DNA of 63,611 nt, the filler included, from Hausera hauseri (lineage: Eukaryota), in NCBI GenBank assembly GCA_046269625.1. It is 11 parts of 11 records of this genome, joined end to end, with 100 filler letters (N's around TTAATTAATTAA, not from the genome) between each part and the next. Parts side by side here need not be neighbours in the genome. Positions count along the whole stretch, not along the records: positions 10,800 to 17,811 come from JBJURY010043998.1; 10 more parts are not named here. One strand, written 5' to 3'. This document shows positions 10,700 through 18,060 of this stretch, piece after piece. The notes below the pieces were generated by a model. That model had not been told where the DNA came from. It did no database searches and was given only the letters and a program-made list of their open reading frames with translations. Made by a program: the position numbers and the translations under genes. The stretch's first letter is position 1; each line of letters starts with the position of its first letter.

Positions 10700-10979
10700 N
10701 NNNNNNNNNNNNNNNNNNNNNNNNNNNNNNNNNNNNNNNNNNNTTAATTAATTAANNNNNNNNNNNNNNNNNNNNNNNNNNNNNNNNNNNNNNNNNNNNC
10801 ACTCATTAAATGAGTCTTATTTTCATCCTTTTTTGAATTTCTTGACTTTATATTGGCTATTTATTGAATTGACTTTAAATTGAATTTAAACATTAATATT
10901 CGTTTAAATTCCTCCTCACAGTTCCGAAACATGAAGAACTGATTAATCACTCTAAATTTACAGTTGGTGCCAATGACTG

Positions 10980-13244
10980 TTTTGATTGCTGACTTGATTT
11001 TACTGAGATAAGGAATTTCGTCACATTTGTTCCAGTTCGATCAAGTTACTAACTGTTTCTGTTTGAATACGAGTCTCCCAGATTTTCTCGTGTCACAAAT
11101 CAAGCCGCACATCAAATGCGGAACGATATTTACTCGATTAAGTATTTTGTTGAAAGGACAGCACAGCTTTAGCCCTTCGCTTGTTCGCGATAATCTCAAT
11201 ATGCTCCATGAGATTTTGATGGTGCACAGAGAAATCTATTCATCACTGCCTATGAATTATATTTCTCCTATTGACTTCAGTGTTCAATTGGAACAAATGA
11301 CCAAACAAACGGAATATCTTGGACAATTGTTGTACGTCGATCCACATATCACATCATCATGGCCTTTTAGTTTACCCAATAATAATCCAACCAAACTCGG
11401 TGGACTAAAGCTTCTTAGGTATCTCTATCAAATCGGTGTCAACCTGATCACACAAACACATTTCTTTCTAACATTTTATTTTCTGGAAAGAACTCTCGAA
11501 ATCGTGTTGCAACAATTGAATTCTTGGTTATTTCAGGGGATTTTCAATAAAAGTTTGGTATATGAGCAGATCGATGATTTCTTATTCATGCCGACTGTAA
11601 TTATTTGTCGAAGAAAGGAAACACTTGCTTGACACACGCATTTCGTTTGAATGATTTGAAACTGAAGTACGGAGAAACATGGCTGTTTGACGAAATTGGT
11701 GATGATTTGCTGCGTTATGGGAAATCTCTTTGTTTATTCAACGAAATTGATCCTGCTCATTTATTATTACAACACACCAAGTCATTAAATGTCGGCCACA
11801 GTTTAAACTGAGCTATTTGATTAAAAACGATTCACAATACCAAACGCAACGGTATTATGAGACTGTCGAACAGCTGCTAAAGTACCTGCTAATGTCATAG
11901 GAGTGTTTCATGAAGCAAAAACAGAAGGATCAAAAAGATCTCGAGATAAATTCGTCAATGAAGAATTAGGACGACATCAAAGAGAAAATGAAAGGATTTC
12001 GGAAATGAAAAGAAGTGAATATGGTAACCTTCGATTGGCTGCTGAATCTGAAAGACAAATGAAGAAGGAAAAGAATGAAGAAGAAGAGCATGAAGACCAT
12101 GAATTGATTCAAAGAGCAATGACAGCTAATAAGAAAATTATTGATGACATAAAAACCGACTGATTGAACTTTACTCCAAGAAAGTTGCTGATGTTGAAGC
12201 TCGAGAAAAGGTTTTTAAGGAGAGAATAAGAGTCTACGTTGAAACTGTTAGGATCTATGGAGCATCATGAACCTTTTAAGGAAAATAAAAAATGCCGATA
12301 AAATTATTCGGATTGTTCTAAGGGAAATTACAAGCGATGATAAAGATGTTTCAAACAATCTCGATAAGCAATCAAATGTTTCTAGTAATGCATTTCATTC
12401 GGTCATTCAAGAACTTATGTACCCTCATAAATATCAGACTTCTTCCACTGACACTGATAAAGTAAATTTTAACCAAACATCCTCAGACCTCAATGGGAAG
12501 GCACAAAATGTTAAGAAAACCACTTTCCCACATCCCTCAGAATCTAATATTCAGGAATGGCTTTATCTCGCCGCACAACCATCGTCATATGATGAAATGT
12601 TCGAAACCTACAAAGGAATAGTCACATTATCTCATCCATCAGCATCAACTGTACAAGACATTTTGTATCATGGTGACGATCATTCAATATCTATTGATAC
12701 TCCACCAAAACCTGAAGTATTATTCGGACATCCCTCTCAATCAACTATTGAAAAGTTTATTCAACTAGCATTGAAACACCCCAATGCACTTAAAAGAAGA
12801 TAACCTTAAGAATAATAGTGCACAACGACATCCATCTGAATCGACAACTCAAGAATCACTTTATTCTACCCGTGTTCCATCTCCACAGTTCGATGGAACG
12901 TTAACAAAATCAAGAATATTAATATTCATAACCATCCGTCATCGTCCACTATTGAGCAATCAATGTATTCAGACTTTCAAGAATCCCCAATGAGAAGTGA
13001 CTTAATCCAATGGGCTCTTAAAAAATTTTCTGGTATGACTAATGGGGAAATGTTGCAACTAACAGATGCCAATCCGGAACTCAAATTAAGCGGAATGTGC
13101 GGTCTAGTAAATGCAGTATCCGTCCATCCGATGAGTCATTCGATAGAAAGTCAATTAGTTGGAAAGACTCAAAAGGGCCACAGTCAAAGTAAGTTTAAGT
13201 GGATTATAATGGACATTTTTCTCTACTCACTGTGCAATCAATGA
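10980..13244 (+). pseudogene. TUBGCP6: Gamma-tubulin complex component 6 (GCP6) fragment, frameshifted, no introns visible in this span
   Basis: GRIP1-like motifs GLKLLRYLYQ, SWLFQGIF, THAFRL, DDLLRYGKSLCLF..DPAH; then a charged coiled-coil (11903-12163); then repeated HPSxSxIQxxLY motifs (12267-12970) resembling the GCP6 insertion repeats. Split over at least 6 ORFs by stops and frameshifts. Confidence 0.75.
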
Positions 13245-13294
13245 ATTGTCTGACTGAGGGATCCAGCGTGCCCGCCTCCGCTGCGCCGCATCCC

Positions 13295-13515
13295 TTATCC
13301 CTGTTTGTCTTTTCCAATAATATACACCTCTATACTTTCAGTGCTACAAACAGAGAGACTTTGCATTGTCTTTACAGACATTTATCTCCCTTGCTTCACA
13401 CCTCGGATTTTTATTTGTCGCATCATGGCTCTATCCTTAATGTCTATGACTCGTTTTCTTCTTTTTTTCTTCTCCAATCATCCACCTCACTCTCCACTTT
13501 CGTCTACGGGGTGGA
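13295..13515 (+). other. Ubiquitin-like domain ending RLRGG, fused in frame to gag (one frameshift in the T7 run 13462-13468)
   Basis: Reconstructed ~74 aa: LSLFVFSNNIHLYTFSATNRETLHCLYRHLSPLLHTSDFYLSHHGSILNVYDSFSSFF/SSPIIHLTLHFRLRGG. RLRGG lies at 13501-13515 in the same frame as gag. Confidence 0.75.
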
Positions 13516-14562
13516 TCGGACCCCGATCCTTCTTATGCTGAAAATTCCACTAAGACCAGATCTGGTCGTCGTCCTGCTGACATTACACCATCTGCTTCTC
13601 ATAATCTTCCTTGTACAGAGTTCTTCCTGGACAAAACTAATTCCATTCGCACCTGGCTATAATTCCATTTGCAATGGCTTAAAGCCAATCACATCACAGA
13701 TTCTTTCTTACGTGCTAATAGCTTGCTGATTCTTTTTCCAGCAAATATCATACAGCAAATTAATAATCTTTCCGATATACTCACCTCCTCAAATCCATAT
13801 AACATGCTCTATGAATCAGTCCTACATATTACCGACCCTTTCATTGACAGCATAATACAAAAATACTTTAATGAACATGCTATCGGAACTCAAAAGCCGT
13901 CTGATTTCTTTAAAACTGCAATTTCTCAACTAAGTTCCTTAGGCGTCACTCCTACAAACAGTGCCGATCTTCTTCGTCGGTATTTTCTTTCTTACTTACC
14001 AACGTCTATCAGAGAGTTGCTTACTGTCGTAGACGATTCAACGGCACTCGAGAAACTCGCCTTACTGGTAGATAAAAGTTCCAACACCTTACAATCAAAT
14101 AGCTCACAAGCAGTAGCTACAGCAACTGCTCACACGCCATCACGCGCAGATAACACTTTATTTTCGCAACAACTGCATATGCTGAAGAAACAATTCGACA
14201 CACTCCAACAGGCAATTTCTGCGATTACAGCCAAACTTAGTGATTTATCTGTGCCTCGAAAAAGTGAAAACCGTGTTTCGCGTAATCGTAGCCTTTCCAT
14301 GCATTCCTTTTGATCCAAATCTCGAGATGGAAGAATAATTTGCTTTTATCATCAAAAAATCCACAGAGACGCAAGAAAATGTCTTCTGGGCTGTCGATTT
14401 TGTAACGAACGTTATGCAGTAGACAACCCAATCTGCATTTATCACACAAAGTATCAGTCCCAGGCTAGGTCGTATGTGTCAGTATGCAAATATTATAAAA
14501 AGAATTCTAGTTTTTTTCCATCTACTTCTCGCTCTTTTCCCCAACAAACCTCAAAAAACTAA
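13516..14562 (+). mobile_element. gag: Gypsy CsRn1-clade gag with two CHCC zinc knuckles (two premature stops)
   Basis: QKPSDF..LLRRYFLSYLPTSIRELL..LEKLALLVDK core; CFYHx9Cx3C at 14341-14394; CIYHx9(Y)x3C at 14434-14487; ends TCA AAA AAC TAA. Confidence 0.88.
14553..14559 (+). promoter_or_regulatory. Candidate -1 ribosomal frameshift slippery site A AAA AAC at the gag/pol junction
   Basis: X XXY YYZ heptamer in the gag frame immediately before the gag stop TAA. Confidence 0.65.
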
Positions 14563-17500
14563 CAACGCCGCCAGATGCCACTGCACATTCTGGTATAGGC
14601 AATACCGTTGAATATTCTAGCCGTTTAACACCGCCTCTGCAATTTTTCCGTTAAAAGCTTCATTGCGCCCGAACAATGCTTCACACATCGACTTCCTCGT
14701 CTATTCAGGAGCTGCTTTTCGCTCCTTCCCTTGTCCTTCACTCCTACATCCACTATTGTTTCTTCTCCACCGCTTTTCACTGCCAGTGGTCAACCGTTGC
14801 ACACAGCAGGTGCCACAGAACTGATTTTCACATTCGCCAACTTGCCAGATAAGTTTGTCTGGAAATTCCACGTGGCCAGTATTAAATCCCCTATAATCCG
14901 CTGAGATTTTCTGGCCACACATGATCTGCTAATTGACTGCAAGTATCGCTGTCTGCTGCGCACAGACTCCATCGTTGATGCCAATAAATATCTACCAAAC
15001 CTCCCATTAGAAACTTCGTTGTTTTCGGGTGTTAACTCACGTGTAAATATAAAAATGTGTTCGTTGACTAATAACGGTATATTCAGTACTTCATCCATTT
15101 TTTCCATCCCATCAAACGTATCTAAGTCAATTTTAAAACAACCGAGTAAACGGAGTGTTGATGGTGGCAATTACGGTTGTTCTTCGCCAATACCATCTAC
15201 TGTCGTTTCTGATGATATGCCTCAATCATTCTCATCACTGGATTCCAATCTCAAATCTTACATCACAACTTCTTGTTTCCGCACACTCAAAAAAGACGCC
15301 AATTTCAAGCCGCTTTCTACAACTTATCACCATATAGTCACCGAACACCAAAGACCTATCAGACTAAAGGTCAGACCACTATCACCTATTAGACGAAAAG
15401 CCGTTGAATCAGAGTTCAATGAACTCGAAAAGCAGGCATTATTAGAAGATCAAAATCACCATGGGCTTAACCATTGCATGTAGTAACACAAAAGATGGCA
15501 CTTACAGACCATGTGGTGACTATCGACAGTTGAACAATCTAACAGCCCTGGATGCTTACTCATTACCTCTCAAAGGACATCCTGCATAGCCTAACCAATA
15601 CTAATACGTACTCCACAATTGGTTTGCATAAAGCTTATCATCAAATTCCGGTTGCATCTGATGATATTCCAAAAATTGCTGTTATTGCTCCATTTGACTT
15701 CTGAATATATCTTTATGCCATTTGGTCTCTGTGGTACTTCCCAAACTTTTTAACGTCACATTGATACCGTCCTCTCGGGCCTTGACTTTACTCATCCGTA
15801 CATTGATGACATATTAGTTGCCTCCGCATCTGTTAAACAACATCAAGAACACCTCCGTATTATCTTTCACAGACTACATCACAGCAATTTGCAAGTCACT
15901 TTTTCCAAGTGCCATTTCTTTCAAAAACGTGTTAATTTCCCAGGCCACGTGATCACTCCTCACGGCCACTCTCTACAACCGGATCGAGTACAGCAATTGA
16001 AAAACATAACGAAACCAACGACTACTACGAATATGAGGAGTTTCTTAGGCACACTCCACTTCATCCACAAATACGTACAGCATTGTTCTGAGCTTACAGC
16101 ACCTTTCGCACATCTATCATCCGGAAAAAAGAGGCAGTTAATCCACTGGACTCCTAATTTAGTAACCAAATTTGATCACTTACGCGAAGGCCTAAAAACC
16201 GTCGAAATATTGGCCTATCCAAAACCCAAAGCAGATCTTATACTTACCACTGATGCTTCTGCCACAGCTACTGGTGCAGTACTACACCAGATTTTTAACG
16301 GCGTCGATGAACCATTAGAATTTTATTCCAGGAAATGCACACAACCCGAAATCCGTTACTCAACATTTGACCGTGAGTTACGCGCCATAGGTCTGGCAGT
16401 AGAACATTTCAAACATACTTCTCTCTTGTCCATTTGTTATTCAAACTGATCACAAGCCTCTCCTGCATATCATGTCGTTAAAACAGCTATCACTGAGGAA
16501 AAAACGACATATATCATACCTATCTAAATTCGGTTTTGTTTTAGAATACATTTCAGGTACAGACAGTTTAGTCGCAGATTTTCTATCGAGGTCAGTTTGC
16601 TCCATTACAGCTCAGCCGATTTTCCCATTCGAAGTCTTAGAGGCCAATCAACCTTCTGTTGATTTCATTAGCTCCTTCAAATCATTTGAGATCATTGATC
16701 GCATTACATATGATACGTCGACCTTCGGTAATAAAATGATCATTCTAACTCCACCTTTACAAAAGCCAGCTTTCCTTCATACGCATTCACTCCATCATCC
16801 GGGTTCGAAAGCAACCTTTTGCCTGCGTCAAAGTCATGTAGTTTTGCCATCAATACGCAAAGATGTACAGGCCTGGGTTAAGGAATGCGTAGCCTGTCAA
16901 AAATACAAAATCAACAAACACCCTAAACCGCCGCTTTACCATTTCCCATGTACATCACGTTTTCATACAGATCATCTTGATCTCGTTGGCCCTTTACCTT
17001 CTGATAACGGGTATCAACATATCCTGAATATGATGGATCGTGCTTCTTGCTGGCCTGAAGCCGTTCCTCTTTGTTCAACGAACACTGATTTAGTAGCCGA
17101 TGCCTTTATAGAAATCTGAATGATCAGTCACCTTCGGGTTTTAGACCTCAATATATTAGCCCATACAAACTCCTGAATCCCTCATCTCATACAGGTACCA
17201 TCTTACACCAAGACAAAACTTCCAACGTCCATATTTCGAATCTGAAGCCCGATTTCTTCATTAATGACAATCCGGATGCCAATTCCACCTCCAATTCGAA
17301 CTCAACTCTTACTCCTCCCATTCCATCCTCAAACTTTCTTCATGACTTTGCACCGTTGCAGCAATCACTGTTCTGTCACAATCAGTCATCATCATCTTCT
17401 CCATCCATCTCGCCTCCCTCTATTTCGTCATCTCCACTATCTTTTTTACCGCCAATACCTACATCGATCGTTTCACAGCCTTCTGTTTCGTTGCCTTCAA

Positions 17501-17700
17501 TTGCATCACCGTTTTTGTTTGACTTATTCTCTTTACCACTCTCATCATCTTCATGACGAGCAACATCGGACATTGGACTAGTCAATCTCACAAAAATTCT
17601 ATCACAAAATGTCGCTCAACAGCCAAACACAAATCAACCAAGCAAGGTACGCAGAGTGACATTTATCATCTACAGCAAGGAAAAGTTCTTTGATGGTACA
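14563..17700 (+). mobile_element. pol: Gypsy pol (PR-RT-RH-IN), decayed
   Basis: Protease FLVYSGA (~14690), RT RPCGDYRQLN and YIDDIL, RH LTTDASATATGAVLHQ..YSTFDREL, IN HSLHHPG..CVACQ, HLDLVGPLP. Internal deletion near 17120; Ser/Pro-rich tail. Confidence 0.92.
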
Positions 17701-18060
17701 CAACGCTTGATACATACTAAAACCGAATAGGCACTAAATACTGTTCATTTGTTACGATTTATTGTTTTTGCCTATATTGTTTTTATCTCTCCTTTTAACT
17801 TTACATAGTTTNNNNNNNNNNNNNNNNNNNNNNNNNNNNNNNNNNNNNNNNNNNNTTAATTAATTAANNNNNNNNNNNNNNNNNNNNNNNNNNNNNNNNN
17901 NNNNNNNNNNNATCTCACCAGAACCACCAGGTTCCTCTGAGAATCAGGAGAAACTGATGGACTAAAATCTGACCTGAGATCAGCTCAAGATTTGACTTTT
18001 AAATAGATTTTCCATAGACTTAGTGTCTTACAAATATCAATTTTATTTTATCCTTAGACA

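Follow-up and report, generated by a model that had tools for sequence, protein, structure and literature searches.

Several proteins are known in which ubiquitin (Ub) or a ubiquitin-like domain (Ubl) heads an unrelated partner. In UBA52 (Ub-eL40), RPS27A (Ub-eS31), FAU (FUBI-eS30) and polyubiquitin the N-terminal Ub or Ubl ends in a pair of glycines (GG) and the partner is freed by deubiquitinases (DUBs); FUBI is a strongly diverged Ubl that is still processed. The Ubl domains of DDI1 and the ubiquilins stay uncleaved. In cytopathic pestiviruses such as bovine viral diarrhoea virus, ubiquitin inserts act as a processing signal that is cut by cellular ubiquitin C-terminal hydrolases (UCHs). 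In long terminal repeat (LTR) retrotransposons and retroviruses, maturation of the structural proteins is generally attributed to an aspartic protease that the element itself encodes. Among the Ty3/Gypsy retrotransposons, the CsRn1 clade is defined by a CX2HX9CX3C (CHCC) signature in Gag (PMC2582038). Here, we describe a Ty3/Gypsy element from Hausera hauseri in which Gag is preceded by a Ubl ending in RLRGG. The element lies on the + strand of the part at 10800-17811 (JBJURY010043998.1) of a 63,611-nucleotide stretch joined from 11 parts of assembly GCA_046269625.1; this whole stretch is called the window, and all coordinates count along it. Sequence comparisons identify the Ubl as a conserved N-terminal Gag module of one clade of CsRn1-like (CHCC-Gag) Ty3/Gypsy elements.

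The Ubl of the window copy is encoded at 13280-13515 (+) in two reading frames that meet at a run of seven T residues (the T7 run). Its parts, together with the leader before it and the linker behind it, are as follows (labels such as P0151 denote protein relatives).

13241..13279, + strand: short leader starting at the first ATG of the Ubl frame, which a TAA at 13196-13198 closes upstream.
13280..13461, + strand: first three quarters of the Ubl, with strands 1-4 and the helix, located by tblastn with P0151 and by a Ubl hidden Markov model (HMM).
13462..13468, + strand: the T7 run, where the Ubl changes frame; the relatives P0001/P0151 and P0003 are single-frame here.
13469..13515, + strand: last Ubl strand and the tail RLRGG, in the Gag frame, with GG at 13510-13515; positions 114-129 of the Ubl HMM.
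13516..13611, + strand: Ser/Asp/Pro-rich linker of 32 codons from GG to the Gag N-terminal motif, from translation; its equivalent is disordered in AlphaFold2 (AF2) models.

Translation of 13199-13731 in the three forward frames displays both halves of the domain. The frame of the open reading frame (ORF) at 13199-13729 reads ...PLSLFVFSNN... and then DFYLSHHGSILNVYDSFSS up to the T7 run. The second frame reads IIHLTLHFRLRGG, reaches RLRGG at 13501-13515 and passes through the linker into C-TEFFLD...IRTWL; after a TAA at 13660-13662, FHLQWLKANHITD goes on in the Gag frame. A Ubl-only HMM built from 27 relatives was scanned unfiltered over 337 six-frame pieces of the 7-kb part. The two best-ranked pieces were the frame 13199-13726 (E of 9e-7, model positions 53-119) and the frame 13450-13659 (E of 0.016, model positions 114-129), and the two matches are adjacent parts of one domain that join at the T run. 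The same division is seen with tblastn: residues 633-690 of P0151 align with 13280-13465 (42% identity, E of 4e-10) and residues 690-1044 with 13462-14538 in the second frame, at 53% identity (E of 1e-115), the latter alignment spanning the stops at 13660 and 14311. An earlier note on this DNA had proposed a Ubl split across the T7 run, with its RLRGG tail continuing in frame through a linker into a CsRn1-type Gag N-terminal motif. The split is borne out by translation, HMM and tblastn, and the continuation by translation.

The match of the two halves to the family model is judged to be beyond chance, and these comparisons identify 13280-13515 as a genuine domain of ubiquitin origin, in a copy that has decayed. 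The link between this copy and ubiquitin is drawn through the family profile, because the window pieces taken alone match no ubiquitin model: they gave no Pfam ubiquitin match and, with phmmer, no PDB ubiquitin match even at E values up to 10.

To place the window copy in a family, a full HMMER (phmmer) scan of 1.84e9 cluster representatives was made with the Gag piece 13663-14313 as the query. The scan returned 157 matches (best E of 4.5e-64), and the census of the Ubl module covers the 150 representatives listed from it, 32 of which carry the module in a single frame. The closest relatives by Gag identity are P0001/P0151 (57%), P0003 (48%) and P0004 and P0005 (~31%); in these, a single-frame segment of ~75 residues stands ahead of the Gag motif and ends in RLCGG, RLLGG or AYGG. 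A common layout is shared by about 30 divergent lineages of the family, consisting of a short leader (with a Met 15-45 codons ahead of Ubl strand 1), a Ubl with (R/K)-L-x-G-G, a disordered acidic or Ser-rich linker of 31-65 residues and the Gag N-terminal motif, such that GG sits 31-65 residues ahead of FFLD..SP..WL in the 32 Ubl-bearing relatives. Gag identity among the Ubl-bearing representatives is as low as 25-30%, and in alignments of 27-30 full proteins both glycines are among only 4-8 invariant columns of Ubl, linker and Gag. A separate homology search with P0003 gave three matches, and a metagenome-contig scan with P0153 found no relative.

The history of the module was followed in a tree inferred by maximum likelihood from 144 Gag segments, with support given as the Shimodaira-Hasegawa-like approximate likelihood-ratio test (SH-aLRT). 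A branch at SH-aLRT 99 sets off a group of 46 rows that holds 31 of the 32 Ubl-bearing rows. Its inner clade of 40 rows (support 92) is made up of the 31 Ubl-bearing rows, five that are N-terminally truncated and four without a Ubl; two of these four have close Ubl-bearing relatives as their neighbours in the tree, and the ORF calls of these two are probably truncated. The remaining 98 tree rows are DUF7041-type Gags, all without a Ubl except P0054, and the DUF7041 Gag clusters in the protein atlas are mostly arthropod. Since the CHCC signature is also common to most of the Ubl-less matches (81/118 representatives, and 28/32 of the Ubl-bearing relatives), the Ubl marks a subclade. The earlier suggestion that the domain has long resided in the element is therefore upheld by 32 representatives, 31 of them in one Gag clade, and by the invariant GG; a one-off chimera, which the same note had named among the outcomes that would overturn its reading, is contradicted by the other family members that keep Ubl and GG ahead of Gag (32/150). 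As a side observation, P0054 is the sole Ubl-bearing member of the LPxFW..P..WF (DUF7041) Gag group. Its Ubl suggests that the module was acquired a second time or that P0054 is a recombinant.

A profile of 27 family proteins, made without P0053, matches mono-ubiquitin, the Ub-eS31 and Ub-eL40 fusions and ISG15 in the PDB with E values from 1e-10 to 1e-7; when P0053 is included, E reaches 1e-11. The alignment covers residues 3-76 of Ub, and the family GG falls on G75-G76. Most Ubl members are <20% identical to ubiquitin. In Pfam, P0040, at 31.1 bits, lies above the gathering score of PF00240, and P0008, P0019, P0022, P0026, P0029 and P0105 fall just below the threshold.

The fold was assessed on AF2 models of the relatives P0004 and P0003, the window copy being split by the frame break. 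The P0004 model, calculated from the family alignment, has a β-β-α-β-β-β arrangement at residues 16-90 with a predicted local distance difference test score (pLDDT) of 72-91: strands at 16-22 and 26-32, a helix at 38-49, strands at 57-61 and 64-66, a short helix and a strand at 85-90. Past the Ubl the model has a disordered linker (pLDDT <50 at 99-108) and then a confident, all-helical Gag. The best Foldseek matches of P0004 in the PDB are nearly all ubiquitin or Ubls (ISG15, SUMO and NEDD8), mostly ubiquitin itself, and against mono-ubiquitin chains the template-modelling (TM) score is 0.80-0.86, with an r.m.s.d. of 2.0-2.5 Å. P0003, which belongs to the window copy's own subclade, repeats this topology at residues 100-168, with PDB matches of a like kind; over the two models, the top matches are to ubiquitin at a TM score of 0.73-0.86. 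By profile and by model, the family Ubl is thus identified as a homologue of ubiquitin with a predicted β-grasp fold. The earlier note had claimed this homology from blocks paired by eye (LSLFV with MQIFV, FYLSHHGSIL with QRLIFAGKQL and HLTLHFRLRGG with TLHLVLRLRGG) and had expected a β-grasp. The same pairs recur in the profile alignment, the homology is confirmed by the family profile, by Pfam in P0040 and by AF2 with Foldseek, and the expected fold appears in the AF2 models of both P0004 and P0003. We regard the structural and evolutionary statements on the Ubl-Gag family as close to certain.

To compare conservation along the domain, residues of the 32 Ubl segments were numbered as in ubiquitin. 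G75 and G76 are kept in 32/32, position 73 is Leu or Ile in 31/32 and position 72 is Arg or Lys in 25/32, and the buried positions 13, 15, 17, 23, 26, 30, 43, 50, 56, 61, 67 and 69 remain hydrophobic. Elsewhere, I44 is replaced by Thr, Ser or Cys in 23/32 and V70 by Asn in 11/32, H68 is variable and K63 is not kept; identity between subclades is <20% outside the tail and core. Because the hydrophobic I44/L8/V70 recognition patch is lost, the domain is classed as a diverged Ubl and not as ubiquitin proper, with the exception of P0053. The residue after GG is Ser in 13 and Met in five, and also Gly, Asn, Ala, Thr, Val, Asp, Gln or Lys, but is never Pro. The Ubl-less relatives P0007, P0024 and P0027 begin 22-45 residues before the Gag motif, which is the length of the linker that follows GG.

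P0053 differs from the rest of the family in its Ubl. Its residues 177-252 align with Ub 1-76 at ~72% identity (E of 2e-28), with Met1 replaced by Ile. The P0053 Gag is ~60% identical to that of P0104, the Ubl of which is highly diverged and barely aligns. These sequences are most simply read as a re-capture, in which the P0053 lineage exchanged its diverged Ubl for host ubiquitin; the slot would therefore need something that any ubiquitin provides.

We infer from this pattern that host deubiquitinases would cut the nascent polyprotein directly after GG, either co- or post-translationally. The cut would yield a Gag with an N-terminus matching that of the Ubl-less relatives, independently of the element's own protease, and would also free the leader with the Ubl. 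This mechanism is favoured because the fold and the R-L-x-G-G tail appear to have been selected without the receptor-binding patch, a combination that is expected of a module cut at its C-terminus and not of an attached ubiquitin signal. It also fits the RLxGG tail, the lack of Pro after GG and the agreement in length between the disordered linker and the N-terminal leader of the Ubl-less relatives. Cleavage by host deubiquitinases is the best-supported mechanism and we consider it fairly probable, and no more than that because loss of the I44 patch could weaken recognition by the common ubiquitin-specific proteases (USPs).

Several points weigh against this reading. The cleavage is inferred for every family member. 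The I44 patch that has been lost is contacted by many USP and UCH enzymes too, such that recognition by ordinary DUBs is not guaranteed, and that none of the 32 sequences has Pro after GG is, taken alone, not significant. The relatives are ORF calls on metagenome or run-assembly contigs and are known as protein sequences, and many of them carry long upstream ORF extensions that are probably spurious. The window locus, which has no 5' LTR and abuts a host exon, is silent on how an intact element starts.

A second explanation, possible but unlikely, is that the Ubl stays attached as an N-terminal domain of Gag, serving either as a ubiquitin signal (for ESCRT, the proteasome or other receptors) or as a solubility or assembly module. 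Conservation of the fold core and the position of Gag directly after the Ubl in every member speak for it, as does the behaviour of engineered ubiquitin-Gag fusions, which are reportedly active in retroviral budding assays and can stand in for late domains there. However, uncleaved Ubls are normally without a C-terminal GG, whereas GG is the sole invariant feature of the Ubl in this family. The receptor-binding patch formed by I44, V70 and H68 is lost, the linker after GG is disordered in the AF2 models, the Ubl-less relatives start where the linker starts and, as P0053 illustrates, an authentic-looking ubiquitin can fill the slot.

It is very unlikely that the released Ubl is itself the point, whether conjugated by host enzymes or acting as a decoy or inhibitor of host ubiquitin and Ubl pathways. 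The R-L-x-G-G tail is largely kept, including R72, which is used in E1 recognition of ubiquitin, and viruses such as baculoviruses encode a ubiquitin of their own, a 'viral ubiquitin' (6kna) being among the profile matches. Nevertheless, a divergence this fast (<20% identity between subclades) is unlike that of a protein that has to fit the E1/E2 cascade, a variable and unconserved leader would remain on the Ubl N-terminus, and loss of the I44 patch counts against binding to ordinary ubiquitin receptors.

The two weakest explanations concern the window locus alone. That the Ubl is a local artefact (a chance likeness, a fragment of host ubiquitin or of a host exon, or a chimeric assembly beside a Gypsy insertion) is barely conceivable: the window pieces alone match no ubiquitin model and the element abuts a host exon with no LTR found, but the module occupies the same place, in one frame, in 32 independent representatives with Gag identities down to 25-30%, and the window halves match the family model and P0151 significantly. 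Programmed ribosomal frameshifting at the T7 run, with the Ubl-Gag of the window copy made by slippage, is just as improbable: a U UUU UUU slippery heptamer is placed exactly at the frame change, but the nearest relatives (P0001/P0151 and P0003) and all other members are single-frame, and the window copy is interrupted by in-frame stops and by numerous further breaks of frame. The T7 run is instead read as an indel, because the relatives encode Ubl and Gag in one frame at that place; the earlier note had also preferred an indel to slippage. A homopolymer assembly error at the T7 run is also possible, because the neighbouring host exon likewise shifts frame at A-runs.

The remainder of the element follows the linker.

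13612..14559, + strand: Gag, with the N-terminal motif C.xFFLD..S...WL (DUF7041-type), a helical core and a CHCC knuckle, from phmmer and tblastn.
14621..17250, + strand: degenerate pol, with protease-like (PR), reverse transcriptase (RT), RNase H (RH) and integrase (IN) regions in pieces across all three frames.

The CX2HX9CX3C zinc knuckle of Gag is at 14341-14394, and a second knuckle is degenerate, with one Cys position lost; the Gag C-terminus reads ...SKN with a stop at 14559, as in the relatives. In pol, the active-site motif of the protease region reads YSGA in the frame pieces, and the RT, in pieces in three frames, has a YIDD box at ~15800. Pfam matches are found to RT_RNaseH_2 (6.6e-23), RT_RNaseH (2.3e-14) and Integrase_H2C2 (4.2e-11). 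The integrase retains its HHCC motif and the start of the DDE core, which is broken off after ~17116; past this internal loss, only the C-terminal part of the integrase (...VHISNLKP) is present. The order PR-RT-RNase H-IN, from Pfam and the frame pieces, is the Gypsy order, and by its Gag knuckle and pol order the element is assigned to the CsRn1 group of Ty3/Gypsy.

This copy is non-functional. Its frame breaks at the T7 run, gag contains two in-frame stops (the TAA at 13660-13662 and a second at 14311-14313), pol is damaged and the piece has no 5' LTR or primer binding site (PBS). No LTR-sized direct repeats were found in the 7-kb part, which ends at 17811, ahead of any recognisable 3' LTR, and contains short chance repeats only; a word search found no PBS-like word upstream of the window Ubl, and a tRNA gene search found none. 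The copy is 5'-truncated. At its other end, the stretch at 17250-17600 (+) after the integrase is strongly C/T-rich and of low complexity, coding for Ser, Pro and Leu, with a GC skew down to -0.58. Open frames are present on both strands there; candidate identities for the stretch are the tail of the integrase, a spacer and a region with the polypurine tract.

A host exon stands immediately upstream.

11036..13188, + strand: exon similar to gamma-tubulin complex component 6 (GCP6), belonging to the host and outside the element, from PDB, Pfam and translation.

The five best PDB matches of this exon are all to GCP6 (residues ~315-547, E values of 0.0025-0.007; the GRIP1-like part), and the Pfam match to GCP_N_terminal is weak (E of 0.04). 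Six degenerate HPSxST(I/V)Q..LY repeats are found at ~12525-13160. The exon is bounded by a CAG acceptor at ~11033-11035, with an AT-rich, intron-like flank, and by GTAAGT at 13189-13194. It shifts frame several times, at least twice at A-runs (~12155 and ~12795), so that either the exon is a pseudogene or the assembly has homopolymer errors. Homology of the element to its nearest relative begins at 13280, ~90 nt past the donor-like GTAAGT (13189) on the same strand, and the interval between exon and Ubl is too short to hold an LTR together with a PBS and a leader. In-frame splicing from GTAAGT at 13189 to an AG at 13258 or 13266 was considered and rejected, as neither joins the host frame to the Ubl frame.

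Host domains are also found upstream of Ubl-Gag within the same ORF in several relatives (P0010, P0164/P0011, P0001/P0151 and P0022), namely histone H2A, 5'-nucleotidase, the CNOT1 CAF1-binding domain with Rrp44 CSD1, and SCC3 HEAT. In P0164 the host part ends ~30 residues ahead of Ubl strand 1. These upstream domains may stem from transcripts that are chimeric, from captured cDNA, from neighbouring genes or from chimeric assemblies. They raise the further idea that the Ubl might serve as a portable adaptor that releases itself: a DUB cuts after GG regardless of the preceding sequence, and an element translated in fusion with any upstream polypeptide would still deliver an authentic Gag-Pol, allowing expression in the style of a gene trap. 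The upstream part would then come either from host exons, joined to an intronic copy by splicing or read-through, or from host cDNA carried in the leader. Hints in this direction are the host domains directly upstream of the Ubl in several relatives, the replaced Met1 codon of P0053 with its ORF open upstream, and the start of the LTR-less window copy shortly past a same-strand GCP6 exon ending in GTAAGT. We put the adaptor idea forward as speculation and rate it as decidedly unlikely.

Two short peptides recur upstream of the Ubl, 75-170 residues from it and in regions that are otherwise unrelated: [ML]VSEV in P0008/P0156, P0164, P0040, P0010, P0016 and P0028, and (K)WCQK in P0053, P0021, P0092 and P0104. 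Back-translation of either peptide gives a TGGTG(Y)C.GA(R)-like DNA word that resembles a primer binding site, and in P0164 and P0040 this PBS-like word precedes the host-like part. Upstream of the window Ubl, no such word occurs.

If the proposed cleavage is true, a whole Gypsy clade would outsource the first step of Gag processing to host deubiquitinases, giving an ancient and stable counterpart of the sporadic pestivirus ubiquitin captures and a retroelement parallel to the ubiquitin-ribosomal-protein fusions. Such elements would also depend on their host in a way that can be tested directly, and might be open to restriction at this point. The family offers a natural series of extremely diverged and presumably still cleavable Ubls from which to learn what DUBs really need, and an example from evolution in which a mobile element took up ubiquitin, let it diverge and apparently took it up again. 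For annotation, gene models with a 'ubiquitin-like domain' in such genomes should be expected to represent the heads of retrotransposon Gags.

Compared with known retrotransposons, the element described here shares the CHCC knuckle, the PR-RT-RH-IN order and a Gag that ends shortly past two knuckles with the CsRn1 clade (CsRn1, PwRn1, Kabuki, Boudicca, Gulliver and AgCR). It differs in the Ubl: ubiquitin is unmentioned in the description of PwRn1 and AgCR (PMC2582038), and most CHCC Gags among the matches are without a Ubl. The tRNA-Trp PBS and LTRs of the CsRn1 type were not found in the 5'-truncated window copy. Ubiquitin is likewise unmentioned in a 2025 paper on a Saci2-like element, and no description of a natural Ub-Gag or Ubl-Gag retrotransposon was found in the full-text literature searched, which leaves subscription journals mostly outside it. 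Engineered Ub-Gag fusions are artificial and usually non-cleavable, whereas the fusions of this family are natural. DDI1/Ddi1 likewise combines a ubiquitin fold with a protein of retroelement type, in its case a retropepsin-like protease, but the DDI1 Ubl is uncleaved and without GG.

The cellular Ub and Ubl fusions are closer, in that a GG-ended Ub or Ubl heads an unrelated protein, and the family profile matches these best. Unlike them, the family Ubl does not start at Met1 but has a variable leader before it, a long disordered linker follows GG and the partner is the capsid-like Gag of a mobile element. With the pestivirus inserts, the family shares a ubiquitin unit placed directly N-terminal to a protein that needs its N-terminus generated, GG at the junction and, putatively, the use of host enzymes. 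The pestivirus inserts are recent, sporadic and near-identical to host ubiquitin, whereas the family Ubl is ancient, clade-wide and diverged; the partner in pestiviruses is a non-structural protein of an RNA virus, and here it is a retrotransposon Gag that would be released by the proposed cleavage. The family would therefore work like the captured-ubiquitin system of pestiviruses but is not taken to be a member of it, because its insert is ancient and strongly diverged.

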